From assembly GCA_964036045.1 (NCBI GenBank), contig OZ038378.1, forward strand, positions 190,526,001-190,590,000: a stretch of DNA of 64,000 nt. The letters are read 5' to 3'. Every line of letters starts with the position of its first letter. The stretch's first letter is position 1. Made by a program: the position numbers and the translations under genes. This stretch comes from Eutreptiella sp. 'Long Island Sound 2002' (lineage: Eukaryota > Protista > Euglenida). Below, in pieces: positions 4,056 through 59,001 of the stretch. The notes beneath the pieces are model-generated. The model was given only the letters and a program-made list of their open reading frames with translations. It had not been told where the DNA came from and made no database searches.

Positions 4056-4766
4056 GGGGGCGCCCTTAGCGCAGGGCGTGCGCACTGCAACTATTTGGGC
4101 ATCTAGCCATATTGGAGACCCATACTTTGTGACACTAGGGGCATCATTGTTGCCCCTAGCATAGGTTTTGGATTTTCACCCACTTTCACCCATTTCCACC
4201 CCTTTTCACTTTTTTTTTTGCTCATCTTCACCATGGACTCCCTAACTTTGGTGTGGGCCCTTGAGTTGGGGTGATGGACTCCCACGCTTTGGCGTGGCCC
4301 CTGGAGTTGACGTGACGGATTGCCTGGGTTTTGCTTGACCACATTCGAACGCCCTATGCGAGGCTGCATCCCTGCTGATGAGGAAGCGTGGTTATACCAC
4401 AAGTTGAAAACAGAGGTTGACGTGGATTCCCTCCCGCAAGAAACTTTGCCCCCCGGTCCAGTTGAGGATGGGATGGACACATACGCGGCTTTGGGACTAG
4501 CTGGTAGGGTGAGTGAGCTTTCAATTGAACAAAAAAGAGGATATGTGTGTGGCTTTCTGCATTTTGCATGATGTCTTATATAAAGTGAAGGTAGCCTGCA
4601 TTTGACTTGAGCTAGGGTAGTTTGAGTGACTTAAATTTCAGGGAATTTGGGTAGCTAGGGTGGCCTAATTTTGAGGGTGTTTGGAAGGGGTTGGTATGGG
4701 GGTTCTTCATAGGGGAATCTAGTCTACAAGTAGCGCGCAGTGCGCGCGCAGTGCCAGGGTTCCCCC
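4056..4766. mobile_element. Non-autonomous TIR element (MITE-like, tentatively PIF/Harbinger-type), copy 1
   Basis: Starts GGGGGCGCCCTT and ends ...GGGTTCCCCC (degenerate TIR); flanked by TAG at 4053-4055 and 4767-4769; near-identical internal sequence to 7296-8045. Confidence 0.6.
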
Positions 4767-13700: not shown

Positions 13701-14490
13701 CACCGAGATTGCCAACCCCCCCCCCCCCCCTTTCATCTACAACAAGCAAAATCTAGGCGATGAGGCAATATGCCTCCCTCCTCTTTCCCGCGCCATGCTT
13801 TATCGGGCTCCTCATGGACTTGAATGTCCCCAAGACCAGCTTCCAGCACATGTCGGAGTTTATGACCCGCCGGGGGGCCGCCTACTCGGCCGCAACGGGT
13901 GTCCATTCCCCCGGACCATCCCCACTTGGGACGATTTCATGGACACATGGAAGGAGATGGCCAAGCCCCTTGAGTTGGGGCCGCTTGTGTCCGTTGCTGA
14001 CCCCCCTATGAGTGGCTGCTCTTGGCCGCTACAATCTTGCGCCCGCTACGTCCAATCGTGCCCCTCGCTTGGGTCGCCATCAATTGGAAGAGGCCCATAA
14101 CCTTCATTTTGCAAGGGAATGCCTACCCGTGTGCTAGTGGTAGTTGGACCCAACTCTTTGGGCCAAAATTTTGAAAAATTGCTTGTAATCTAGGCCTCTA
14201 GGGAACGGTTTGGCCGCAACAGGCTTCAGATGATAGTGTAGATGGGCAACAAATGGTGTTCATAGAGCGCCCTGTCTTCCCCTATCTAGTGCCTTGCAAG
14301 ATGAAAATATATGAGATGGCCCCTTGGGAGCAACCACCACCCTAGTGTGGGGGTACCATTGATGGTGCCATACCTCTTTCTGAGAGGTGGTCATGTCTCA
14401 AGACTGCAACAATTCCCCCATGCCGGAACCAGACAAGGGCATGGCTTGTCATGGCTCTTTGGAACAGTGGAATGCTGAGGTTAAATTCTC
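10750..14490 (+). mobile_element. Degenerate YR retrotransposon (gag, YR remnant, RT remnant), cut off at its 3' side by the 1.13-kb repeat
   Basis: gag-like ORF, then frameshifted RPYS(L)RI recombinase-box-like motif at 13119-13140, then stop-riddled RT-like sequence (MGNKW at ~14250); ends not defined. Confidence 0.45.
11147..12277 (+). CDS. gag-like ORF1 of a tyrosine-recombinase (DIRS/TATE-like) retroelement
   Basis: ORF track 10850-12277, likely start MSQFKHA at 11147; K/S-rich linker and C-terminal CxxC...HW...C motif (CRFCKAHHWFWDGPAYGC) resembling that of the gag at 62788-63492. Confidence 0.55.
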   Translation: MSQFKHATAASTDVDWSWERLISEQHDILDVAWSALVAQPKLAMKIPAKHRATVLLAGSATWTSCNRVNTTSLARIFFDQLGVTMVNSSFSYYRDALLFGMVLNWGLEVQSLDLTTEQLAAAFALAQRLAVRPPPSATQTPMATDGGQEYTEAGEQTPDPSQKVRYDALTIKNAKTIRKRTGTTRWTQKLAKALEHYLKAQRELPEEEYTPGQPALEMQLQIGEELAAHVWSIILDCDDPGKKALKSADKHKKKKEKLKREHHKKGKGRSRGSRKHLSDSSGSEEDSSTSSSDSSSSSLSGETPRKGASRSAGASSSWSPAKPTMVIIDGKEHFRGKTSNNLIDCSRPPQTKCRFCKAHHWFWDGPAYGCPGPKSK

Positions 14491-25752: not shown

Positions 25753-26639
25753 GCTTGAACCCTATGCTAGGGCTGGGTTGGAGTTATTGTTTGGGTCCAA
25801 AACGGAGGAGAGTAATGGAGAGTGACAAAAGTAGCCATGAACGAAATTTGGGGGATCTTGTTCAGCCTAATCAACATGGTAGGATGCTTAGGGGGAGGGC
25901 AAGGGGAGGTAAAGGGAGCGTGCGATGGACCAACGCTTGGCCTTGGGGGCATGTACCCCCCAAATCGCCCCACCTGGACCCCACCCCCCCAACCAACCCT
26001 ACCGGACCTCCCCCCCCCCCCCGGGCAAAAGCCCTCCCAGACCCCCCCCCCCTCGCCCTCCGTTCCCCAGAGAAGCCCTCCTCGGCGGCTACCCCCCCCC
26101 CCGAGCCCCCCCCCCCCCCCCCCTAGGGGGCCTTCGGCGTACTTCTACTGGGCGGGGGGTCGCGTCCAAAAGCGAGGAGACGCCCCCCCCGTGAATGAGA
26201 TATTTCTTTCGTTCTTTTTTCCCACTAAGGGCAGCCCGAGGTTATCAGTGGCAGGATTTAGTTACCAACAGCAGTTGACACCCAACCGGCGGACGTTGAT
26301 GCTTAATCAGTCAATAGTCAGCGAACGCCGAGGGAACCGTAGGTCGGCATTTTTCCTTTGTTCCCCCTTTTTGGCATTGATGACAGCCCTGGTCACAAGT
26401 AGATTTAGATCATTGAGCAATGCCTACACATGTCTTCAAACAACGTCATCGCCCGCCCCCCCGCCCACTGCTCTGCCCCCAGTCCCCCCCCCCCCTCAGT
26501 CCTCATGTCTCTTGTTCTGCAGCGGTCCTCAGCCCAAACAATCCCCCAGCACCTCAGCACTCTGACTGCCTCACGTGCGCCAACCCCGTCTCGGGCCTCC
26601 CCAATGCCGGCGTAACAACACGTCGCACCGCGCGCCCAC

Positions 26640-45360: not shown

Positions 45361-46102
45361 GACCCAAGATCCGGGGGGGGGGGGAGTTTTTTCACAGAGT
45401 AATTGTTTTGCTTGGAGTAGATTTGTGCCAGTGCGTTGTAGGGCGGGCACACGGGGGTCAGGGCCACCAGTACAAGCAAAACCAAGGTTAGCAATAACCT
45501 TGGTTGTGCCATGGGGCTGGGGGGAGGTCATGTACCAAACCTTGCAGACCTTGCACTATGAACCAGCTAGCCACCTCGATGCTGCTTCAGCTGAAGTGTT
45601 TTTTGTAGGGACCGGATCCCTATTCAAATGGCCCATGCGGGCGTTTGTCTACAAGGCAGCCGAATAAAGGCCGGTTGGGTTGCTGCCACCGTTGTCATCA
45701 TGTTCTTCAAAGAGCCCGGACCGCACCAGAGTAATTGTTTTGTTTTGAGCAGATTTGTGCCAGTGCATTGTAGGACAAGGAAGGGGGGTGAGAGCCACCA
45801 TTACAAGCATAACCAAAACGACCCCCCCCCCCCCCCCTCTCTTCTAAACAAGGCGTGTTTAGTGCCCATTGTCTGGTCTCCATGTGCTGCCATCCCAACA
45901 GTGCTGTAGCATGCCGCAGCATGAAAAAATTTTCCATGGGACTGTTGGGGCTTGTCCCCAACATCCCATCTGGGGCGCGGGGGGGGGGGGGGGGCAGGGT
46001 CATGGAGGCTGCCAAAAGTTTCTTGTGCTTATCTTATTTGTGACCAATCCCGGGACCTCTATCAATATGGATATGGGTGTGCGTGTGTGTTCGCGTTTCT
46101 AG

Positions 46103-46600: not shown

Positions 46601-46737
46601 CGTGCACTAGAGAGAAGGGAGAGGGGAGGGAGGGAAGGACGGACAGACGGAGGGACGGACGGACGGACGGAGGGGAGGGACGGATGGAGGGACGGAAGGA
46701 CGGATGGAGGGAGGGAGGGGGGGAGGGGAGGGAGGGA

Positions 46738-48566
46738 TTTAGGTTTAGGCCTAGTAGGGCCGTACACTATTGGCTTCTCGTTGAGGGCCTCACACCTTAG
46801 CGTTTGGAGAGCGGCCACCGCTGGCGCTAGGGCCTGGTCGTGCACCCTGTGGATGAGGCCCCTCACGCTGTGTGTGTGGCAGCCGCGGTCTCGCTCTGCT
46901 TCGTGCGCCCCGCCTCGTCTCTACTGCTGCTATGCTGCAGTGTACACCGCAGGCATTCTCTGCAATTTGTGCATGGTCTACACAGTGCTGCTGCTTCAGC
47001 TTCTGTGCTGTATTCTTCACTGCAGTCATCCGCGGCAGTGTCAACTGTCCAAGCAGTGCTGCTGCCTCTGCAATGCAGCTTCTGTGCTGCAGTTTTCATT
47101 GCAGTTGTCTGCAGCAGCGTCAGCACTGTCCACGCGGTGCTGCTGCCTCTGCACTGCAGCTTTTGGGCTGCACTCTACACGGCAGTCGTTCGCTGCTCCA
47201 TCACCACTGTCTACACAGCTTCATTGCTATAAGCCTTTTGCTGCACCCCAGTCCCGTTACCAATCGAGGGACTATTGGGGCGTCTGCCTACTTGCTGCTC
47301 ACCTTCTCACTGGCGGAGCACTTGCCTGTTGCTCCTGTGCTGCAGCTCATTGCAGCCAACCCCTGCCCCATTACCAATCTAGGGGCTATGCCCCATTACC
47401 AATCTAGGGGCTATGGGGGTGTTGCACCAGCAGCCCGTTTGCTGCTGTTGTTGTGCCACAGTGGTTGCAGTGCTCGTTTTGTGCTGCAGCTCATGTGCTG
47501 CACCTCATTGCAGCCAACCCCTGTCCCGTTACCAATCGAGGGGCTATGAGGGTGTTGCACTAGTAGCACATCAGTTGCAGCTCGTTTCATGCTGCAGCTC
47601 ACTAGCTCTCTGTAGCCAACCCCGTCCGATTCTGAATCAGTGTGCCACCAGCACATCAGCACATCAGTAGCTGCTATCGTGCTGCAGTTAGTTTCCACGG
47701 CTCGCTTCATGCTGCAGCTCCTACGCTGCAGCCCATTGCAGCCGACCCCCGCCCCGTTACCGATTCAGGGGCTATGGGGAAGCTACAATAGTAGCCTGAC
47801 ATCTTGACATCTGCTGCTGTCAATGTTACAGAATGCTGCAACTCATTTCGTGCTACAGCTCCCGTGTTGCAGCTCACTACAGCCAACCCTGCCCCGTTAC
47901 CAATCTACAATCTAGGGGCTATGGGGGAGCTGCACCAGCAGCACCTCAACTGCATCTATTGTGGCAACCGTTGTGTTGCAGTAGCTGCGGCTCGCACAAT
48001 GCTGCTGCCTCTGCACTGCAGCTTCTTCTGTGCTGCAGTGTTCACTGCAGTTGTGGGCTGCAGCATCAGCACCGTCTACATGGTGCCGATGCCTCTGAAC
48101 GCTCTTGGTTTCCTTCGTTGGTTTCGCATTGTGTGGCTTGCGTGATTTTCTTCCGTCGCGGTGCTCTGTGTGCGTGCGCCGTTCGCACCACGCCGCGGTG
48201 CTCATCGTGGACGCGTTCATCGGCCTCGGTTGCAGGGACCGAGGAACAGGGGCCACGCCTTGATCAACTGACGCTGGCGCAACATTGTCTACACAGCATC
48301 CTTGGGCCTCTATTTATTCACCATGTAAACTCATGGTGCCGGGCGCCGCGGGGTTTGGGACCGCCTGCTGCTCAGGGATGGGCTTTGGGGGTTCGTGTTG
48401 CTGATGTGTGTGGTGTGTTTGTTTTAGCTTGAGTTACACCGAAGCTCACGCATTATGCGGCGTTTGTGCGTCAACGCACACGGCGTCTCATCTCCGAGGT
48501 TGCGCCTGCTCGGAGGTTGGGTGCTCTCAGTCGCCCACATATACACGTTTGCTGAAGGGTCCATCC
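46738..48566 (-). mobile_element. 5'-truncated retroposon end A in (TCCC)n; tail (CCTAAA)2; contains the CTG/CAG minisatellite
   Basis: 3' motif homologous to ends B and D; bounded by GGGA tracts at 46620-46737 and 48567-48598. Confidence 0.6.
46925..48080. repeat. Degenerate CTG/CAG-rich minisatellite with two interleaved unit types
   Basis: Recurrent gtgctgctgcctctgcactgcagctt units and ~6 recurrences of ccc(g/a)ttacc(a/g)at.(g/t)aggggctatgggg. Confidence 0.75.
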
Positions 48567-48598
48567 GGGGAGGGGAGGGAGGGGAGGGGAAGGAGGGA

Positions 48599-48695
48599 TT
48601 AGGTGAGATTAGGTTAGTTGGGCCGTGCGGTATCGGTTGCTCAGGAGCGGCCTCTCGCTTTGCCGGTGGCGGTCTCCGGCGGACGCTAGGGCAAT
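48599..48695 (-). mobile_element. 97-bp retroposon 3' end B in (TCCC)n
   Basis: CGGCAAAGCGAGAGGC..GAG..ATACCGCACGGC then a CTAA-type tail; GGGA tracts on both sides. Confidence 0.6.
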
Positions 48696-48735
48696 GGGAG
48701 GGAGGGAGGGAGGGAGGGAGGGAGGGGAGGGAGGA

Positions 48736-49186
48736 TTTTTGGAGTTGGATTTGGAGGCTAATCTTAAGGCTCACAGGCCGCCTGGGGTGGAGCACGATGG
48801 CGTCCCCGACGACTATGCATATTGGCCGGCCATGCCATGTGAGATGCACTACCGGGGCCCTCAATGGACCCTTCCCTCCCCCTTGGCCCGGAGGTAGTGC
48901 TTGGGCCACGCTCCGCTCAGCACGCGGAGCGATCGGGGCTCCACCCCGAGGCCCCATCCCGGCGCCCGTTGTGGGAGCGTAGGGCCACTTGGACCCTGTC
49001 CCCTCTCCTGCCACTGCCCCCTGCACTGCCCTTGCACTGCCCTTGGCGCCGCCCCCCCGCTCAGCCTCTACCACAGTCCTGACTCGCACTGGCCATTGCC
49101 CTTGCCACGGTCCCTCATTTTAACCCCCCCTCGGCCCGCTGCCCATGCCTTTGCACCTGCCCCTGCCCCTGCACGCCTTGGACACC
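48736..49186 (-). mobile_element. 5'-truncated retroposon end C in (TCCC)n; CCAAAT/CCAACT-type tail
   Basis: Minus ORF (…VVHLTWHGRPICIVVGD…) runs into a short repeat tail abutting TCCTCCC; GGGA tracts on both sides. Confidence 0.5.
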
Positions 49187-49220
49187 GAGGGAGGGAGGGG
49201 AGAGGGGAGGGAGGGAGAGA

Positions 49221-50751
49221 GTATGGTTTTGTGGTTTCTGGTTTGTGGATGACCCGCCCAAGGCTCCGGCACATGAGGGGCTCCCAACCGCCACAGGGCG
49301 GCTTACTTGGTCCCGCCGTGGTGGGTCGAAGCGGGCAGCCCGTGGCAGCACCCCGCGCCACCGGGGGCCAAAGCCTGCCAAGTTTCATTGGGGGGGGGGG
49401 GGGGCTCCGCTTTCTGTGTGGGTAGGTGAGTGCATGGGGAGGAGTGGGCATCACCTGTGCCGGGGCGGCGGAGTTGATGTTGGAGAAGGTCCGGCCTGGG
49501 TCCGTGCGGTTGCGGCTGGCAAGGCATAACGGGGTCCATGAAGTGCCACCGCTTCATGCATTGCCCCAACACGTTTCACCTCGTGAAAATGGGGCCTAGC
49601 GGTGCTGTCTGGTGGCGGGTCAATGTCCTTGGGGTGTTTTTGTGGCTGTGTGGTGGCCCCAAGGGTTGTTCTTGCTGCACGTCTGCACCCATGCGGTTGC
49701 GTGGCGCTCTGTCGCGGTGTCGCGTGCAGGGGGGGGCAAGACGGGCAGGGCGAGCACTGCGCGTGGTATCGTCTAATTTTTGGGCCATTTGTGCATGTCC
49801 AAAGGCGAACCACTGGCGCGCCCGACAGAGAGTCCGTCAGGGAGGTCATCTTGCATTAGCGATACCGTTAGGCGTGCCTGGAGGTCACAGAGATCGGAGG
49901 TACGCACTAGCAACACCAAGCTGCTGTCCTCCGGGCTAGGGCTGCCATTTGGATGACCTTGTGCAGGGTGCTACCAAGGGCGTCGACGACCCACGCGCTT
50001 GTGAACTAAGGGGGCGCTGTGGGGGGAAGGGGGATGTAGGGGGTTGCGCCGGTGCTCACCCGCCACGAGCGGCAGCGACGGAGCATCCAGCCAAGGACCA
50101 CACGGAGGACGTGCACGGGCGCTGGAGGGGGGGATGGGGCGGGGGACCAGAGCGTGGGGACCGATGCTAGGGCCTGGCGCAGGGTGGGGGGGGGGGGGGT
50201 GCTGTGCTAGGGCGACGTGGTGGTCGGCTGCTACCGCGGCACACTGGGCGTAAAGGAGGGGGTCGTCGCCCACGACCTTCCAGGAGCCGTTGAGGTTGAC
50301 GAGAAGTTGAAAGGGGGGCGGCGGCGCAGCAGGTGGTCGGTGATGTCGGACGGGCCAGGTGGCAGTATGGGCAGACCACGCTGCCATACCCCGGGGGATG
50401 GCGCTAGGTGGAGAGCAGGCGGTGGAGCATGGTGGTGTGGACTGCACGCGGCTCGGTGGTGTGGACTGCACGCGGCTCGATGGAGGCATTGTCAGCAGAG
50501 TTGTCAGGGACGCCATCCCACCCTCCCGCCCACCCATCCTCCCTCCCTGACCCTCGGAAGGCGGCAGAGGCGATCACCCTCCGCCACAGCATTGCAAAGT
50601 ACTCCCGGCATTTCCCACCGCTGGACCCCTCCTGGTCCTCCTCCCATCTCGTCGAAGTCGTCGTCCCCATGTTTCCCTCGGGCGATGCTAGTCCCCGGCG
50701 GCGAAGGGCCATGCCCCGCTCGTCTCGTGGGTGGTTGCTGGTGCACGCCGT
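49221..50751 (-). mobile_element. 5'-truncated degenerate LINE end E in (TCCC)n; (AAACCA)n-like tail
   Basis: Frameshifted CPYC...DHLLRR finger at ~50310-50380, similar in type to the finger in element D; GGGA tracts on both sides. Confidence 0.55.
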
Positions 50752-50795
50752 GGGAGGGAGGGAGGGAGGGAGGGAGGGAGGGAGGGAGGGAGGGA

Positions 50796-53700
50796 TTCAG
50801 GTTCAGGTTCAGGATCGCCGTACGCTATTGGCTTACCTCGGAGGCAGCCTCACGCCTTGCCGGTTGAGAGCGGCCGCCGGCGGTCACGAGCGCGGCTTTA
50901 CCCAGAGCCACTCATAGCGACGGGAGGGGTGCAGCCCGTCGCGTCGCTCTGCTGGCAAGGCGTGCGCTAGCGGCGCACGACGTCGCTGCGGCTGGTCCGG
51001 GGAAGGCACGCCGGGATCCACCTTGCTGGCCCCTTGTCCCGTTGTATACGCTCCCCTTCGCGGCTGTGCCGCTTCTCTCCTGTTCTTGCTCCTGCTGCGG
51101 TCTCTGCTTTGTGCCCGGGGAGTGCGTGTTTGCTGGTGTTTCACGGTAGCGCCGCTTGCTGGTTGTTTGGTCGTGGAGTGTGCTGGTGGGTGTCTGGTGG
51201 TTCCTGCCCTGCTCGTAGGATGTTTGCCGGCGGGGTGGTGTGTCTGGTAGGCTGGTGGAGTGGTGCTTGGTTTATTGGGCGTGCATGTCCCTGCACCGCC
51301 GAAGCCTGGGCCACCGCTCTCTGTGGCAGCGTGCTGCCATACCCCCTGTCCTCACCTGCCACCTCCCTGCCCTGACACAAGACGCGGGCATTGGACATGT
51401 ATATTTCATTCGCATGGCTGAGGGCGCGGCGCTGTAAACGGGTGATTGTCCCATGGCACCCCATGTGTGATGACGACCTGTGCGTCCTGTCCTGTGTAGA
51501 CGGTTCGAACCGGGGCATAAGCCAATAGTTCTGTCGCTGCACTCCATAGGCAGGGCAAGACATATACTCGGGGGCACCACCCCGTCGTGAGGGCTTGCAG
51601 GCGGTGCCATTGCTGGGGTGAGGCCCCCAGTGCACAGACGATATATAGCTCATCAGGGGTGAGCGAGGGCGCCGGAAGGGCGAGCGCTGGTGCGTTGGCA
51701 AGGTACAGCCCACTCCAAGGCAGGAGTCGCATGACAAAGGTCAGAAGGAAGCTTTGATCTATGGGGAGTTGTTCAGATGGATCGAGGATGACGCGAGTGT
51801 GACAGTCTGGATATGTCGGCGTCCTCCACGCAACAGGGCGTGCTGAGATGGTGTGGGGGATGGCCCGTAGCACCTCGGGCAGCGTCTGTCTGGGTCGTAG
51901 TGGGCCTGTGATGCTGGAGAGACGGCGCATGAGGGACGACTGGTCTTCTGGGCCAATAGCTGGGGGTTGACCGGGGGGAGACCGAACGTGCCAGAGGCCT
52001 GCCAGTGAATACACCACCGCAGTCTGCATAGCTTGACTGGGTACTGGGACTGACGTGCCAAACTGAACACCGAAGGCTATGGAGGTGCGGGGGTCGCACA
52101 GGGTGATTCCATCGCTGGTCATCCACGCCGTGAGCTGCAAGGGCGTCACCCCGATTAGTTCAGTGGCGCGTAGGACATACGAGCTGGTCCATAGGACGCT
52201 GGCCGCTCGGATGAGGGCCGCGCAGGCGTAGGGGCAGTGATCCCGGATGTGCGAGGGGAGATGATGCACTGAGGTGAGGCAAAAGGGGCAGGGGTAGCAG
52301 CCCACTTCTGCTGGGGAGGGGGCCAGGGCGTAGAGACGGAACTGCATGGTCCGGTACACGTCAGCTTCAGGGAGCTCACCACGTTGGTGTAGCAGCTGCC
52401 AGGGCTTGGCGTCCCAATCGTTGAGGCGGCGTACCATTGGCGCACTGGTGACTCGGTGGTACAACCCATCCATGGCTGGTCCAATGTCGTACAGGGGCCC
52501 GCCGTCGATGGAGCCCAGGGTACAGCTTGTGAGGGCTTCGGGGAGGGGTATGGTGCGGGGCTTGGCCATCGGGAGGGCGTTCTGGGAGAGGTCGTGTGCG
52601 CGACGATTAAGCAGTGACAGGATGTCTTCGTGGTGGGTGGCGTGCTGTGCCTGCGTCCACACGTCGTTGTACCGCAGCCCCTCACAGGCGGCCATGATAT
52701 GGCGGAAGTACCGCGCCAGGACGGTATGTGCGGGCGGGCCACGGGTGAGGCGATGGGTACAGGTATCAGTGGAGTCCGTGACAAGGATGACCAGCCCGGA
52801 CCACAGCCTCAGGAGCCACAGGGGGATGAGTCGAGCGAACCACTCGGCTATGGTGCTAGTGGGCGCATAGATGGGGAAGGCTGCCTCAACGGTAAATAGT
52901 TCGCCCACTGTCGGCTGCCACGCTACGGCGGCGATGCCCACTCGGTCGTGGCGCACTGCAGCGTCATAGGCAAGCAGGATAGTGGAGGCGTGCCGCAGAG
53001 CATCGGTGGTGCCTGTGATGTGGAGGCGGCAAGGGGAGAGTGTAGGGCCCGGGATAGAGTGTAGCTGAAATCCGTGGGGTTGGAGGACGCGGAGGATGTG
53101 TGGGGTGTCGGACAATGGGTGTCCGTCGTGGAGGAGGTATTGGGCGCCCGCCCGGGCGAGGGGGTGCCTGCAGGTTGCCGCACGCAGGAGAGTTGCGGCA
53201 AGCTGCACCACATTGCGTAGGTACAGTGCCGGGCATCCGGCTCCGCCGAGGTGGAGGGAGCTGCAAAGGAACCATACCGGTGTCCATTTGGGAAGACGGT
53301 ACACTCGTCGGTAATGCCGATTGGTAATCACCTGTAGAGCTGTGAGGGACGGTTGTGGGAGGAGAACGCCGTGGGTGATGTAATCCAGTTTGGCCAGAGC
53401 ATACATGTAGAAGGCTCGAATCCTGAGGACGGGATTCATGGGGTCTCCTGTAGCCAGCCTCGCCCCTGTGCGGCGGAATACTGGGATGACCTTGGCCAGA
53501 GCGCGACGAACAGGGAGCTGCGAGAGCAGGGGTATACCCACGAGCGTCGGGGGCTGTGCCTTGGTCTTGGCGTCCATGTCTGGCACTATGGCTACAACAT
53601 GGTGCAGGGTGTCAGTTGCCATGCTCACGAGGTAGTACTCCAGCTTGCCTGGGTTCGGGACCCTGCCCACTGCTCGGGAGCGTTGGATGCACTCTGTGAC

Positions 53701-53849
53701 TGCCTGTACAACGCGGCGGAGTGAGGGGGCTGTGAAAATGCGGTCATCGCTGAAGCCCGCCCGGGAGCAGGGCAGTGGGCCGCGGGGGCTGGGGAGGGAC
53801 ACGTCGCTATAGACCGTCATGGTGGTGTTCAGGCACGCCTGAGTGCCCT
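50796..53849 (-). mobile_element. 5'-truncated LINE D (RT C-terminal half, RNase H-like, CCHC finger) in (TCCC)n; tail (CCTGAA)3
   Basis: GGGA tracts at 50752-50795 and 53850-53885; contains the 804-aa ORF. Confidence 0.8.
51406..53820 (-). CDS. Truncated LINE ORF2: RT (FSDD), RNase H-like, zinc finger
   Basis: GFSDDR, NPGKLEYY, LAYDAA...IAEW...VTDS...WTQAQH...NRRAHDL, CPFC...HIRDHC. Confidence 0.8.
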   Translation of the reverse strand: MTVYSDVSLPSPRGPLPCSRAGFSDDRIFTAPSLRRVVQAVTECIQRSRAVGRVPNPGKLEYYLVSMATDTLHHVVAIVPDMDAKTKAQPPTLVGIPLLSQLPVRRALAKVIPVFRRTGARLATGDPMNPVLRIRAFYMYALAKLDYITHGVLLPQPSLTALQVITNRHYRRVYRLPKWTPVWFLCSSLHLGGAGCPALYLRNVVQLAATLLRAATCRHPLARAGAQYLLHDGHPLSDTPHILRVLQPHGFQLHSIPGPTLSPCRLHITGTTDALRHASTILLAYDAAVRHDRVGIAAVAWQPTVGELFTVEAAFPIYAPTSTIAEWFARLIPLWLLRLWSGLVILVTDSTDTCTHRLTRGPPAHTVLARYFRHIMAACEGLRYNDVWTQAQHATHHEDILSLLNRRAHDLSQNALPMAKPRTIPLPEALTSCTLGSIDGGPLYDIGPAMDGLYHRVTSAPMVRRLNDWDAKPWQLLHQRGELPEADVYRTMQFRLYALAPSPAEVGCYPCPFCLTSVHHLPSHIRDHCPYACAALIRAASVLWTSSYVLRATELIGVTPLQLTAWMTSDGITLCDPRTSIAFGVQFGTSVPVPSQAMQTAVVYSLAGLWHVRSPPGQPPAIGPEDQSSLMRRLSSITGPLRPRQTLPEVLRAIPHTISARPVAWRTPTYPDCHTRVILDPSEQLPIDQSFLLTFVMRLLPWSGLYLANAPALALPAPSLTPDELYIVCALGASPQQWHRLQALTTGWCPRVYVLPCLWSAATELLAYAPVRTVYTGQDAQVVITHGVPWDNHPFTAPRPQPCE

Positions 53850-54074
53850 GAGGGAGGGAGGGAGGGAGGGAGGGGAGGGGGGGACGGAGGGGCAGTGGGA
53901 CTGGCTTCCATGCTCACCCACAACAATGTCCCCCTCCCCGACACACTGAAGACGTCAACCAACAAAAGCAGGGCACACAGAAGACATCGCACCGCTAGAG
54001 CTGGCCCAATACCTGGTCCAATGCACATTCCGTACAGCGGGGGCCAGCGAGGGGGGCAGCCTATTCGAATTCTA

Positions 54075-54545
54075 ATCCCCCCCCCCCTTCCCCCCAGACC
54101 CCCCAAAGTTTTCGAACCCGTCTTTCTCCAAATTGAGATTTTGGCGGAAAGTGAAGGCGCCGAATTTTTTTTTTTGTGTCCTGAGGGGGTAATTTTTTTT
54201 TTTTACCCTACGTGTCTATACTCAAAATACTCAGGATTTGGTGGAGAATTCAAAAATGGGTGAAAAACACACAAAAACCTTTGACCCCCGACCTGACCTC
54301 CGGGTCAGACCTTGGCGGATGGGAGCCTGAGCTAATGGGCAAATTTTTCTGAAAAAAATTTTTCCCCAGTTGTGTATGTTCAAAATGATCAGCGCGTCAT
54401 CGGGATCATTTTGAGGTATCTATGTTGGGTTACCCACTGACCCCCCCTTGGGAGCCCGGTGGCTGACCGGCCAACCCCCCCCCCCCCCCCTCCAGACCCC
54501 CAAAAGTTTTCGCACCCGGTTGGGGTCCAGAATTTGAACAGGCTG
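54075..54545. repeat. Short dispersed repeat with internal direct repeats (poly-C-agacccccaaagttttcg.accc) and small hairpins
   Basis: Matching segments at ~54078 and ~54476; hairpin caaaatgatc...gatcattttg at ~54381-54412. Confidence 0.4.
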
Positions 54546-58427: not shown

Positions 58428-59001
58428 CAACTAGGGGGGGGGGGGGGGGGGCACACCACAGAGAGAGTCGCACATACAGGAAGCGCCGGGTACGCTAGTG
58501 TTCAGCCCACTCCCGTACACTCCCTTGAAGGCAGTGCGGAGGTGGAAAGGATGCTTAGAAGGTCGCATGCGGACGTTGGGCGGGGGACGAGCCGGCTACC
58601 CCAGACATCATCCCCCTCCCGTACACCCCCCTAAGCAGTGCGGAGGTGCAGCAGATGCTAAAGAGAGCACGAAAACAGCCAAGAACGGCCCGCCAACTCT
58701 TCCAGTAGGCGGGACCGCATCAACATGGGCGGCAAGGCAACCACCACACAGATGACAGATACGGACTTGTGAGTTCTGAACCCCCCCCCCCCCCATGCGG
58801 TGCCAAAGCACAGTCAGCAACCACCTGGTGTGGTACAGAACTGGTCTGCGCTGCAGTGCAGCAAGAAAAACACTGAACAATGTGGTTATGACCATGCGCC
58901 TGTGACACGGGGGCGTATGCGAGCCCAGTTTCCGTTGCCTCATGCCCCTGCGGTGAAGTCATGTTAGGTTTAAACCATTTCTGAACAGAATAGCATAAGA
59001 G

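Follow-up and report, generated by a model that had tools for sequence, protein, structure and literature searches.

The locus described here is a stack of retroposon insertions in a 64,000-nucleotide stretch of DNA, hereafter the window, from the euglenid Eutreptiella sp. 'Long Island Sound 2002' (GenBank assembly GCA_964036045.1, contig OZ038378.1, positions 190,526,001 to 190,590,000). The window has a G+C content of about 56% and is carried on a 201-Mb contig of a 2.28-Gb assembly. Direct reading of the stretch, combined with a Tandem Repeats Finder (TRF) scan, revealed six GGGA-type tracts and, between them, five retroposon blocks of 1829, 98, 452, 1530 and 3054 bp, which we call inserts A to E. 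This alternation had been proposed in an earlier note made from the sequence alone, and both approaches confirmed that its coordinates were accurate. The five blocks, read on the minus strand where they all lie, carry at their 3′ end a short-repeat tail followed directly by TCCC or CTCTCTCCC. The abutment of differently tailed 3′ ends on TCCC or TCTC, also described in that note, was seen in every block.

By increasing coordinate, the stack opens with the downstream target remnant, a compound (TCCC)n/(GTCC)n microsatellite recognized by its sequence and by TRF periods of 4, 12 and 20 (46616-46737). Insert A (46738-48566), placed by its genomic copies and their shared 5′ end, is separated by a C-rich tract of the TCCC/CCCCT type (tract 2, 48567-48597) from insert B (48598-48695), a 5′-truncated 3′ end placed by genomic copies, alignment and flanks. 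The (TCCC)n tract 3, with 9.5 copies (48696-48734), precedes insert C (48735-49186), the 3′ terminus of an abundant retroposon with a (TCCAAA)n tail, recognized from genomic copies and flanks, and tract 4, of the TCCC/TCTC type (49187-49221), precedes insert D (49222-50751), an old 5′-truncated copy of a putative second family of long interspersed elements (LINEs), identified through genomic copies and local BLAST. Tract 5, a (TCCC)11 with 100% matches (50752-50795), leads to insert E (50796-53849), a young 5′-truncated LINE of family E identified by tblastn, genomic copies and its RNase H fold, whose 5′ flank is the upstream (TCCC)n target remnant (53850-53891). All these features are on the minus strand, and the tracts were delimited with TRF. 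A seventh C-rich tract, of opposite polarity (plus strand), is located inside insert D at an inversion joint (50516-50548; TRF and local BLAST).

The 5′ and 3′ flanks of insert E share a 26-nt match, inside a repeat where the length of the target-site duplication (TSD) cannot be delimited. Together the six tracts measure about 313 bp, from which five duplications of about 15 bp each have to be taken off, leaving roughly 240 bp for the original tract. That about 240 bp of tract received five insertions, every one of them following the C-rich strand in its orientation, lies far outside what chance would give. Since the genomic copies of all five blocks have differing neighbours, the stack is not a composite unit that was duplicated whole. 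The presence of separate genomic copies for each of the five inserts likewise bears out the proposal that they are independent retroposons of several families, of the type that target-primed reverse transcription (TPRT) produces. In the following, L-numbers (L002, L104 and so on) are labels of genomic copies outside the stack.

The 3′ end of insert E, which finishes with a (CCTGAA)3 tail at 50796-50813, is 92-99% identical to 20 genomic copies. Examination of 10 kb around these copies, with L002:850-9518 as the reference element, provided full-length elements of about 8.65 kb (L002, L005, L006, L009 and L013), which all start with CCTGGTGCCACC and finish with (CCTGAA)3. No long terminal repeats (LTRs) and no terminal direct or inverted repeats were found in L002, and 5′ truncation is variable in this family, with 5′ ends at many positions. 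Two open reading frames (ORFs) are encoded, ORF1 of 661 amino acids and ORF2 of 1765. Insert E retains ORF2 residues 952-1765 as an open frame that aligns with the L002 ORF2 at 98.6% amino acid identity and free of gaps. It starts at motif C (FSDD) of the reverse transcriptase (RT) and covers motifs C to E and the thumb, the RNase H, the CCHC motif and the 3′ untranslated region (UTR). The RNase H and CCHC motifs that the earlier note had assigned to this longest insert are indeed present, while the RT assigned to it is represented by its C-terminal part, from motif C onward. A tblastn search of the window with the family E proteins gave a match in insert E only.

Comparison of ORF2 with Pfam identified an Exo_endo_phos (APE) domain at residues 300-502, with a score of 28.8 bits for a cut-off of 24.5. 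The recovery of full-length copies, suggested beforehand as a way to type the endonuclease, thereby succeeded for family E and gave the APE type; the same domain was found in the relatives P0006, P0019, P0032, P0033, P0035, P0041 and P0158. Pfam recognized no domain in ORF1 or in the 804-residue ORF of the window, and its RVT_1 model missed the family E ORF2, reaching 27 bits, under the cut-off, in the relatives P0041 and P0158. The alignment consensus of 18 relatives contains RT motifs A to E, of which motif A has an invariant D, motif B reads QGD and motif C reads FSDD. A profile of these 18 relatives, searched against PDB, matched LINE-1 ORF2p (E-value 1.5e-12), mainly via its APE part, and the R2Bm RT (8gh6, E-value 2e-8, over the palm) together with other R2 RTs; a phmmer search of the PDB sequences with ORF2 gave no match, and the family profile alone succeeded. 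For the RNase H region (window 52381-53058, minus strand), an AlphaFold2 model was obtained with a predicted local distance difference test (pLDDT) value of 88.6. The top Foldseek matches of this model were RNase HI structures (E-value 3e-7, probability 1.0, template modelling score to target 0.64-0.73), and in the alignment D, W, D and H do not vary at all and the AEW motif has a nearly invariant E. A CCHC zinc finger lies C-terminal of the RNase H. With an APE, an RT, no LTRs, 5′ truncation and TSDs, family E is an APE-RT-RNase H-CCHC non-LTR retrotransposon.

A HMMER search of 1.84 billion cluster representatives returned 243 ORF2 relatives at an E-value of 0.001 or less. None of the ten clusters that were checked was informatively named, their sources being ENA, Logan and one JGI record. 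A word-based homologue search gave three close relatives only, and language-model look-alikes of family E, taken as a lead only, were LINE clusters with RVT_1, APE and RNase H. Judged by these searches, the family E lineage is very isolated, and its RT is very divergent. Three copies at different loci (L010, L015 and L020) share identical internal deletion breakpoints, at reference positions 4146 and 8190, and retain ORF1 and the APE part, the RT and RNase H being absent; the breakpoints of other copies are private. These three copies represent an RT-less derivative retrotransposed in trans.

Insert A ends in (CCTAAA)2 and has other genomic copies with 74-90% identity, several of which share the same 5′ terminal base (query position 617, window position 48566). 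It contains 71 nt resembling the family E 5′ UTR and showed no ORF2 homology in a tblastn search with the family E proteins. Where the earlier note had taken all inserts for retroposon ends, the shared 5′ base identifies insert A as a full-length, non-autonomous element of about 1.8 kb and not a truncated end. Its interior carries 81-bp tandem repeats at 46997-47211 and, at 47240-47930, units of about 130 bp with a recurring CCCGTTACCAATC...GGGGCTATGGGG motif, a satellite-like cargo. Relatives of insert A also recur every 6.67 kb at C26:15.55-15.63 Mb and in C1008 (L030-L033, L035), where they share a flank made of poly-C, a short unique string and poly-G. This series is a tandem or segmental amplification of an element-bearing unit, not a set of independent insertions.

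Insert B, with a degenerate (CCTAA)n tail, has at least 40 genomic copies at 88-96% identity. The degenerate (TCCAAA)n tail of insert C belongs to a family with 1245 first-look candidates, the best copies being 82-90% identical; no coding signal was detected within 400 nt upstream of the tails of this family. Insert D consists of a C-terminal ORF2 remnant with a CCHC finger, then a 3′ UTR, then a degenerate (CCAGAA)-like tail. About 40 copies of it are 67-77% identical along as much as 940 nt, and a 94-nt core reaches 93-94%. Four of them (L104-L107) continue upstream into coding sequence for an RNase H C-terminal motif and a CCHC motif, read by eye, and these remnants in other copies suggest that insert D represents a second LINE family. 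In about 26 of the listed copies, at least 115 nt of its 5′ segment (50549-50663) have the reverse orientation. Such a 5′ inversion resembles twin priming, apart from the plus-strand C-rich tract at the joint.

The repeat units of the tails all begin with CC or TCC, and their number is nearly constant, at three, throughout families E and D and for the majority of B copies. Two further families were met among the genomic copies: family F, in L101, has a (TCCAAA)3 tail on a CT-rich tract and family G, in L102, a (TCTACC)3 tail on (TCCC)n. A conserved module of about 85 nt lies immediately upstream of the tail in families A, B, E, F and G, and the 3′ module of insert C is unlike that of A, B and E. 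Analysis of the conserved module with RNAalifold gave a closing stem and an inner hairpin in which two pairs switch between CG and GC, most pairs being invariant, so that this predicted secondary structure is only suggestive.

To describe the target, downstream flanks were tabulated for 100 copies elsewhere in the genome; the removal of seven duplicated loci left 93 independent copies. The queries contained no flank sequence, so the sample was not biased to any flank, and the background consisted of 110,920 positions of the same window, on both strands. The flank starts with (T)CC in 82% of the copies compared with 10% of the background, has at least 12 C in its first 20 nt in 71% compared with 1.3%, and contains at least two TCCC words in 24 nt in 42% compared with 0.5%. 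Poly-C of at least 8 nt stands at the flank start in 6% of copies and 0.2% of the background, and (TCCC)n of at least three units in 11% (10/93) and at none of the 110,920 background positions (Fisher p values lie between 5e-8 and 1e-101 for these features, and between 1e-31 and 1e-101 for the four other than poly-C). Tandem repeats make up the flank in 31% of the copies (29/93) and in 0.04% of the background. The targets include repeats of CCCCT, CCCCTG, CACCC and CCACCT, (TC)n, a CCTCCCCGCAT-type minisatellite, C-rich DNA of unique sequence and some poly-C. Copies on (TCCC)n number 5/16 in family A, 4/20 in C, 1/19 in E, 0/18 in B and 0/20 in D. The common denominator of the targets is C-rich DNA that starts with (T)CC and contains short C-runs; (TCCC)n is one strongly favoured substrate and not the defining one. 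Homopolymer C or G runs of 10-18 nt occur in the window about once per 2.5 kb (for example at 13716-13730, 26106-26123, 45822-45837 and 58434-58451).

Analysis of the junctions clarified the origin of the C-rich DNA. In nine family E copies with defined 5′ ends, the TSD measures 12-17 bp and opens with 3-5 C and then a T or an A, in many cases within a longer C-run; in L006 and L005 it includes unique bases. In each of L004, L007, L011 and L012, one and the same minisatellite runs on past the insert at either end, and in L019, as in the stack, the target repeat likewise lies on both sides. Because the TSDs start in C-runs and minisatellite flanks the inserts on both sides, the C-rich DNA was there before insertion, as target; the elements did not bring it along as a tail, nor was it added without a template. 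That the GGGA/TCCC tracts are target and not element, as first proposed from the sequence, was thus upheld by the TSDs and by the differences in flank from copy to copy.

The register of the junctions is equally regular. When a flank begins directly with (TCCC)n, the junction is always tail|TCCC (inserts A and E of the window, and L019, L021, L024, L029 and L102), which implies a primer strand ending in ...GGGA-3′. According to the junctions, it is the G-rich strand that receives the first nick, which falls within a short G-run or at its border (in (GGGA)n, after the A) and, in family E, 3-5 nt from the end of a C-run. The first flank base is T in 17/20 copies of family C, whose unit is TCCAAA, versus 14/73 copies of the other families (p = 1e-7). 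Insertions are oriented along the C-rich strand, also where its polarity switches in L101. There (L101:9476-10215), a CT-rich tract turns GA-rich; the family F tail lies in sense against the CT part, and on the GA part a copy tailed with (CCTGAAA)3 lies in antisense.

Taken together, these data make it probable that the stack arose by five TPRT insertions, from at least four lineages, into a compound microsatellite that served as target for a divergent group of APE-type LINEs preferring C-rich DNA, (TCCC)n not being the defining feature. This explanation, held with the same good confidence as a whole, includes the view that all the inserts belong to, or depend on, this very divergent APE-type non-LTR group. 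First, the APE endonuclease would nick G-runs, and the freed ...GG(A)-3′ end would pair with the CC(U) that opens a tail unit, or else with read-through RNA rich in C, and prime cDNA synthesis at the end of the RNA tail. Secondly, the RT, having probably recognized the 3′ module of about 85 nt, would copy the RNA. Thirdly, a staggered second nick 12-17 bp away would duplicate the tract, a duplication observed in family E, so leaving C-rich DNA on both sides of the insert and a site that stays targetable. As the target is strand-asymmetric, insertions would take the same direction, and a duplicated target combined with this asymmetry would yield a head-to-tail stack. Re-insertion into a regenerated tract, put forward in the earlier note, accounts in this way for the co-oriented stack, with the TSDs and the C-rich DNA on both sides as its basis.

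Several points weigh against this explanation. The copies were sampled by the BLAST rank of their 3′ ends, non-exhaustively. TCCC-containing targets are rare in family D (1/20), whose insertion at this locus may be a looser hit. Poly-C/G runs of at least 10 nt occur about 25 times in the 64-kb window, nearly all without a LINE tail; C-richness alone is thus insufficient. The TSDs come from family E alone and cannot be delimited within pure repeats. Which sites the endonuclease nicks, and how pairing proceeds, are deduced from junctions only. Lastly, no empty, pre-insertion allele of this locus was seen.

Another explanation, which we consider unlikely, is that target choice is RNA-guided and self-reinforcing. 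Since each copy lies immediately upstream of C-rich DNA, its read-through transcripts, or the CC-initial tail units, would offer C-rich 3′ ends for pairing with the G-rich strand once this is nicked. A short-repeat RNA would then serve as template for extending the 3′ end of the G-rich DNA, much as in telomerase. The near-constant number of three tail units and the nick 3-5 nt from the end of the C-run fit such a process. If true, families with unrelated 3′ modules would converge in this way on the same landing pads.

It is improbable that the pattern is passive and driven by structure, polypyrimidine/polypurine, G-quadruplex or i-motif tracts breaking, or being nicked by the host, and capturing LINE cDNA with no specificity on the part of the endonuclease, or insertions surviving better there. 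A structural rule would suit targets that are low-complexity, strand-asymmetric G/C tracts of many sequences, as well as the convergence of unrelated families (D and C, whose 3′ modules are unlike those of A, B and E). However, regular TSDs of 12-17 bp and nucleotide-precise junctions point to a defined staggered cut by an endonuclease, an APE domain is present and reaches the Pfam curated cut-off, and long poly-C/G runs, although abundant, are mostly empty.

A LINE clade strictly specific for (TCCC)n, comparable to Waldo, Mino or Dong for their repeats, had been the expectation of the earlier note and is now very improbable. The stack itself speaks for such a clade, as do the ten copies on (TCCC)3 or longer against none in the background, the frequent use of (TCCC)n in families A and C and the position of family G next to (TCCC)n in L102. 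Yet these ten are all that the 93 copies provide: 89% of the sampled copies elsewhere lie off (TCCC)n, families B and D were never found on it, and the targets include many other C-rich repeats as well as unique C-rich DNA with TSDs. Strict specificity is therefore already largely refuted by the flank table. Finally, the notion that the TCCC tracts are the terminal microsatellite of the elements, the stack being a series of tandem elements with no target preference, deserves hardly any credence, for although a TCCC-type sequence follows every insert of the window, the flanks after the tail vary between copies, the C-rich stretch lies within the TSD and is repeated at the 5′ junction, accompanied in L006 and L005 by unique bases, and the same minisatellite stands on both sides of L004, L007, L011 and L012.

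The preferred explanation, TPRT by a C-rich-preferring group of APE-type LINEs, can be set against several known systems. Microsatellite-specific APE-type LINEs have been described, with Waldo in (ACAY)n, Mino in (AC)n, Kibi in (TC)n, Koshi in (TTC)n and Dong in (TAA)n (PMC3812793, citing Kojima & Fujiwara 2003, 2004). Like them, the euglenid elements are of the APE type and orientation-specific in simple repeats, with the repeat on both sides and repeated hits possible. Unlike them, they use a composition class of C-runs, TCCC and CCCT instead of one microsatellite. By the described features they further differ from the Waldo type in having an RT missed by RVT_1, an RNase H, an ORF1 with no recognizable domain and a euglenid, not animal, host. 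With its RNase H located C-terminal to the RT, family E resembles I, Ingi, Tad1, LOA and the other LINE groups that bear this domain.

The TRAS and SART elements of Bombyx mori are LINEs of telomeric repeats whose APE cuts in a G/C strand-asymmetric repeat; they form co-oriented arrays and carry poly(A), and their target choice is credited to the specificity of the endonuclease together with pairing of the 3′ end. The insertions studied here are, in contrast, non-telomeric and dispersed over chromosomes, with short non-A repeat tails. LINEs of the stringent type, in the CR1/L2 group with UnaL2 of the eel, have a conserved 3′ stem-loop and a repeat tail of 5-7 nt in place of poly(A). The euglenid elements are similar in combining a conserved 3′ RNA module with a short-repeat tail, and in having non-autonomous elements that share the 3′ end. 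They differ in that the structure of the module is weakly supported, most pairs being invariant. CR1/L2-type LINEs are not known for preferring C-rich targets.

With mammalian L1 (8uw3, 8sxt, 9hdo), the similarities are an ORF2 that combines APE and RT, TPRT, a comparable TSD length, 5′ truncation, a 5′ inversion recalling twin priming (insert D) and non-autonomous partners mobilized in trans. A nick at TTTT/A combined with a poly(A) tail in L1 would be the counterpart of GG(A) combined with a CC-initial tail in the euglenid elements. These lack poly(A), possess an RNase H and use another nick motif, and the profile match to L1 is obtained chiefly via the APE. Our literature searches found no paper on the target choice of Euglena LINEs, and a preprint on methyltransferase retrotransposons mentions, for Euglena, LTR and DIRS elements only.

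The case is an added example of a known LINE habit and not a new mechanism. To the few non-LTR elements that target repeats, it adds a target class of the C-run/TCCC type and a LINE lineage of euglenids that is deeply divergent. It also shows how co-oriented LINE stacks are built by a strand-asymmetric target together with TSDs, which helps explain a repeat-rich euglenid genome of 2.3 Gb. With a shared target class, different tails and 3′ modules, and apparently intact copies that are 98-99% identical, these families offer a natural system for separating the part of the endonuclease from that of RNA-DNA pairing. For annotation, the fact that Pfam RVT_1 overlooks these RTs is a warning.

Two observations concern the surroundings of the stack and the genome at large. 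A repeat of about 300 bp is present just past the stack, at 54184-54487, and copies with 84-86% identity flank L002 and L003. A 24-nt string that we take to be the spliced-leader exon of Euglena gracilis has 3309 exact occurrences in the genome, dispersed on both strands, compared with 0 for a control, a dispersal that exceeds what would be expected from arrays of spliced-leader RNA genes alone.

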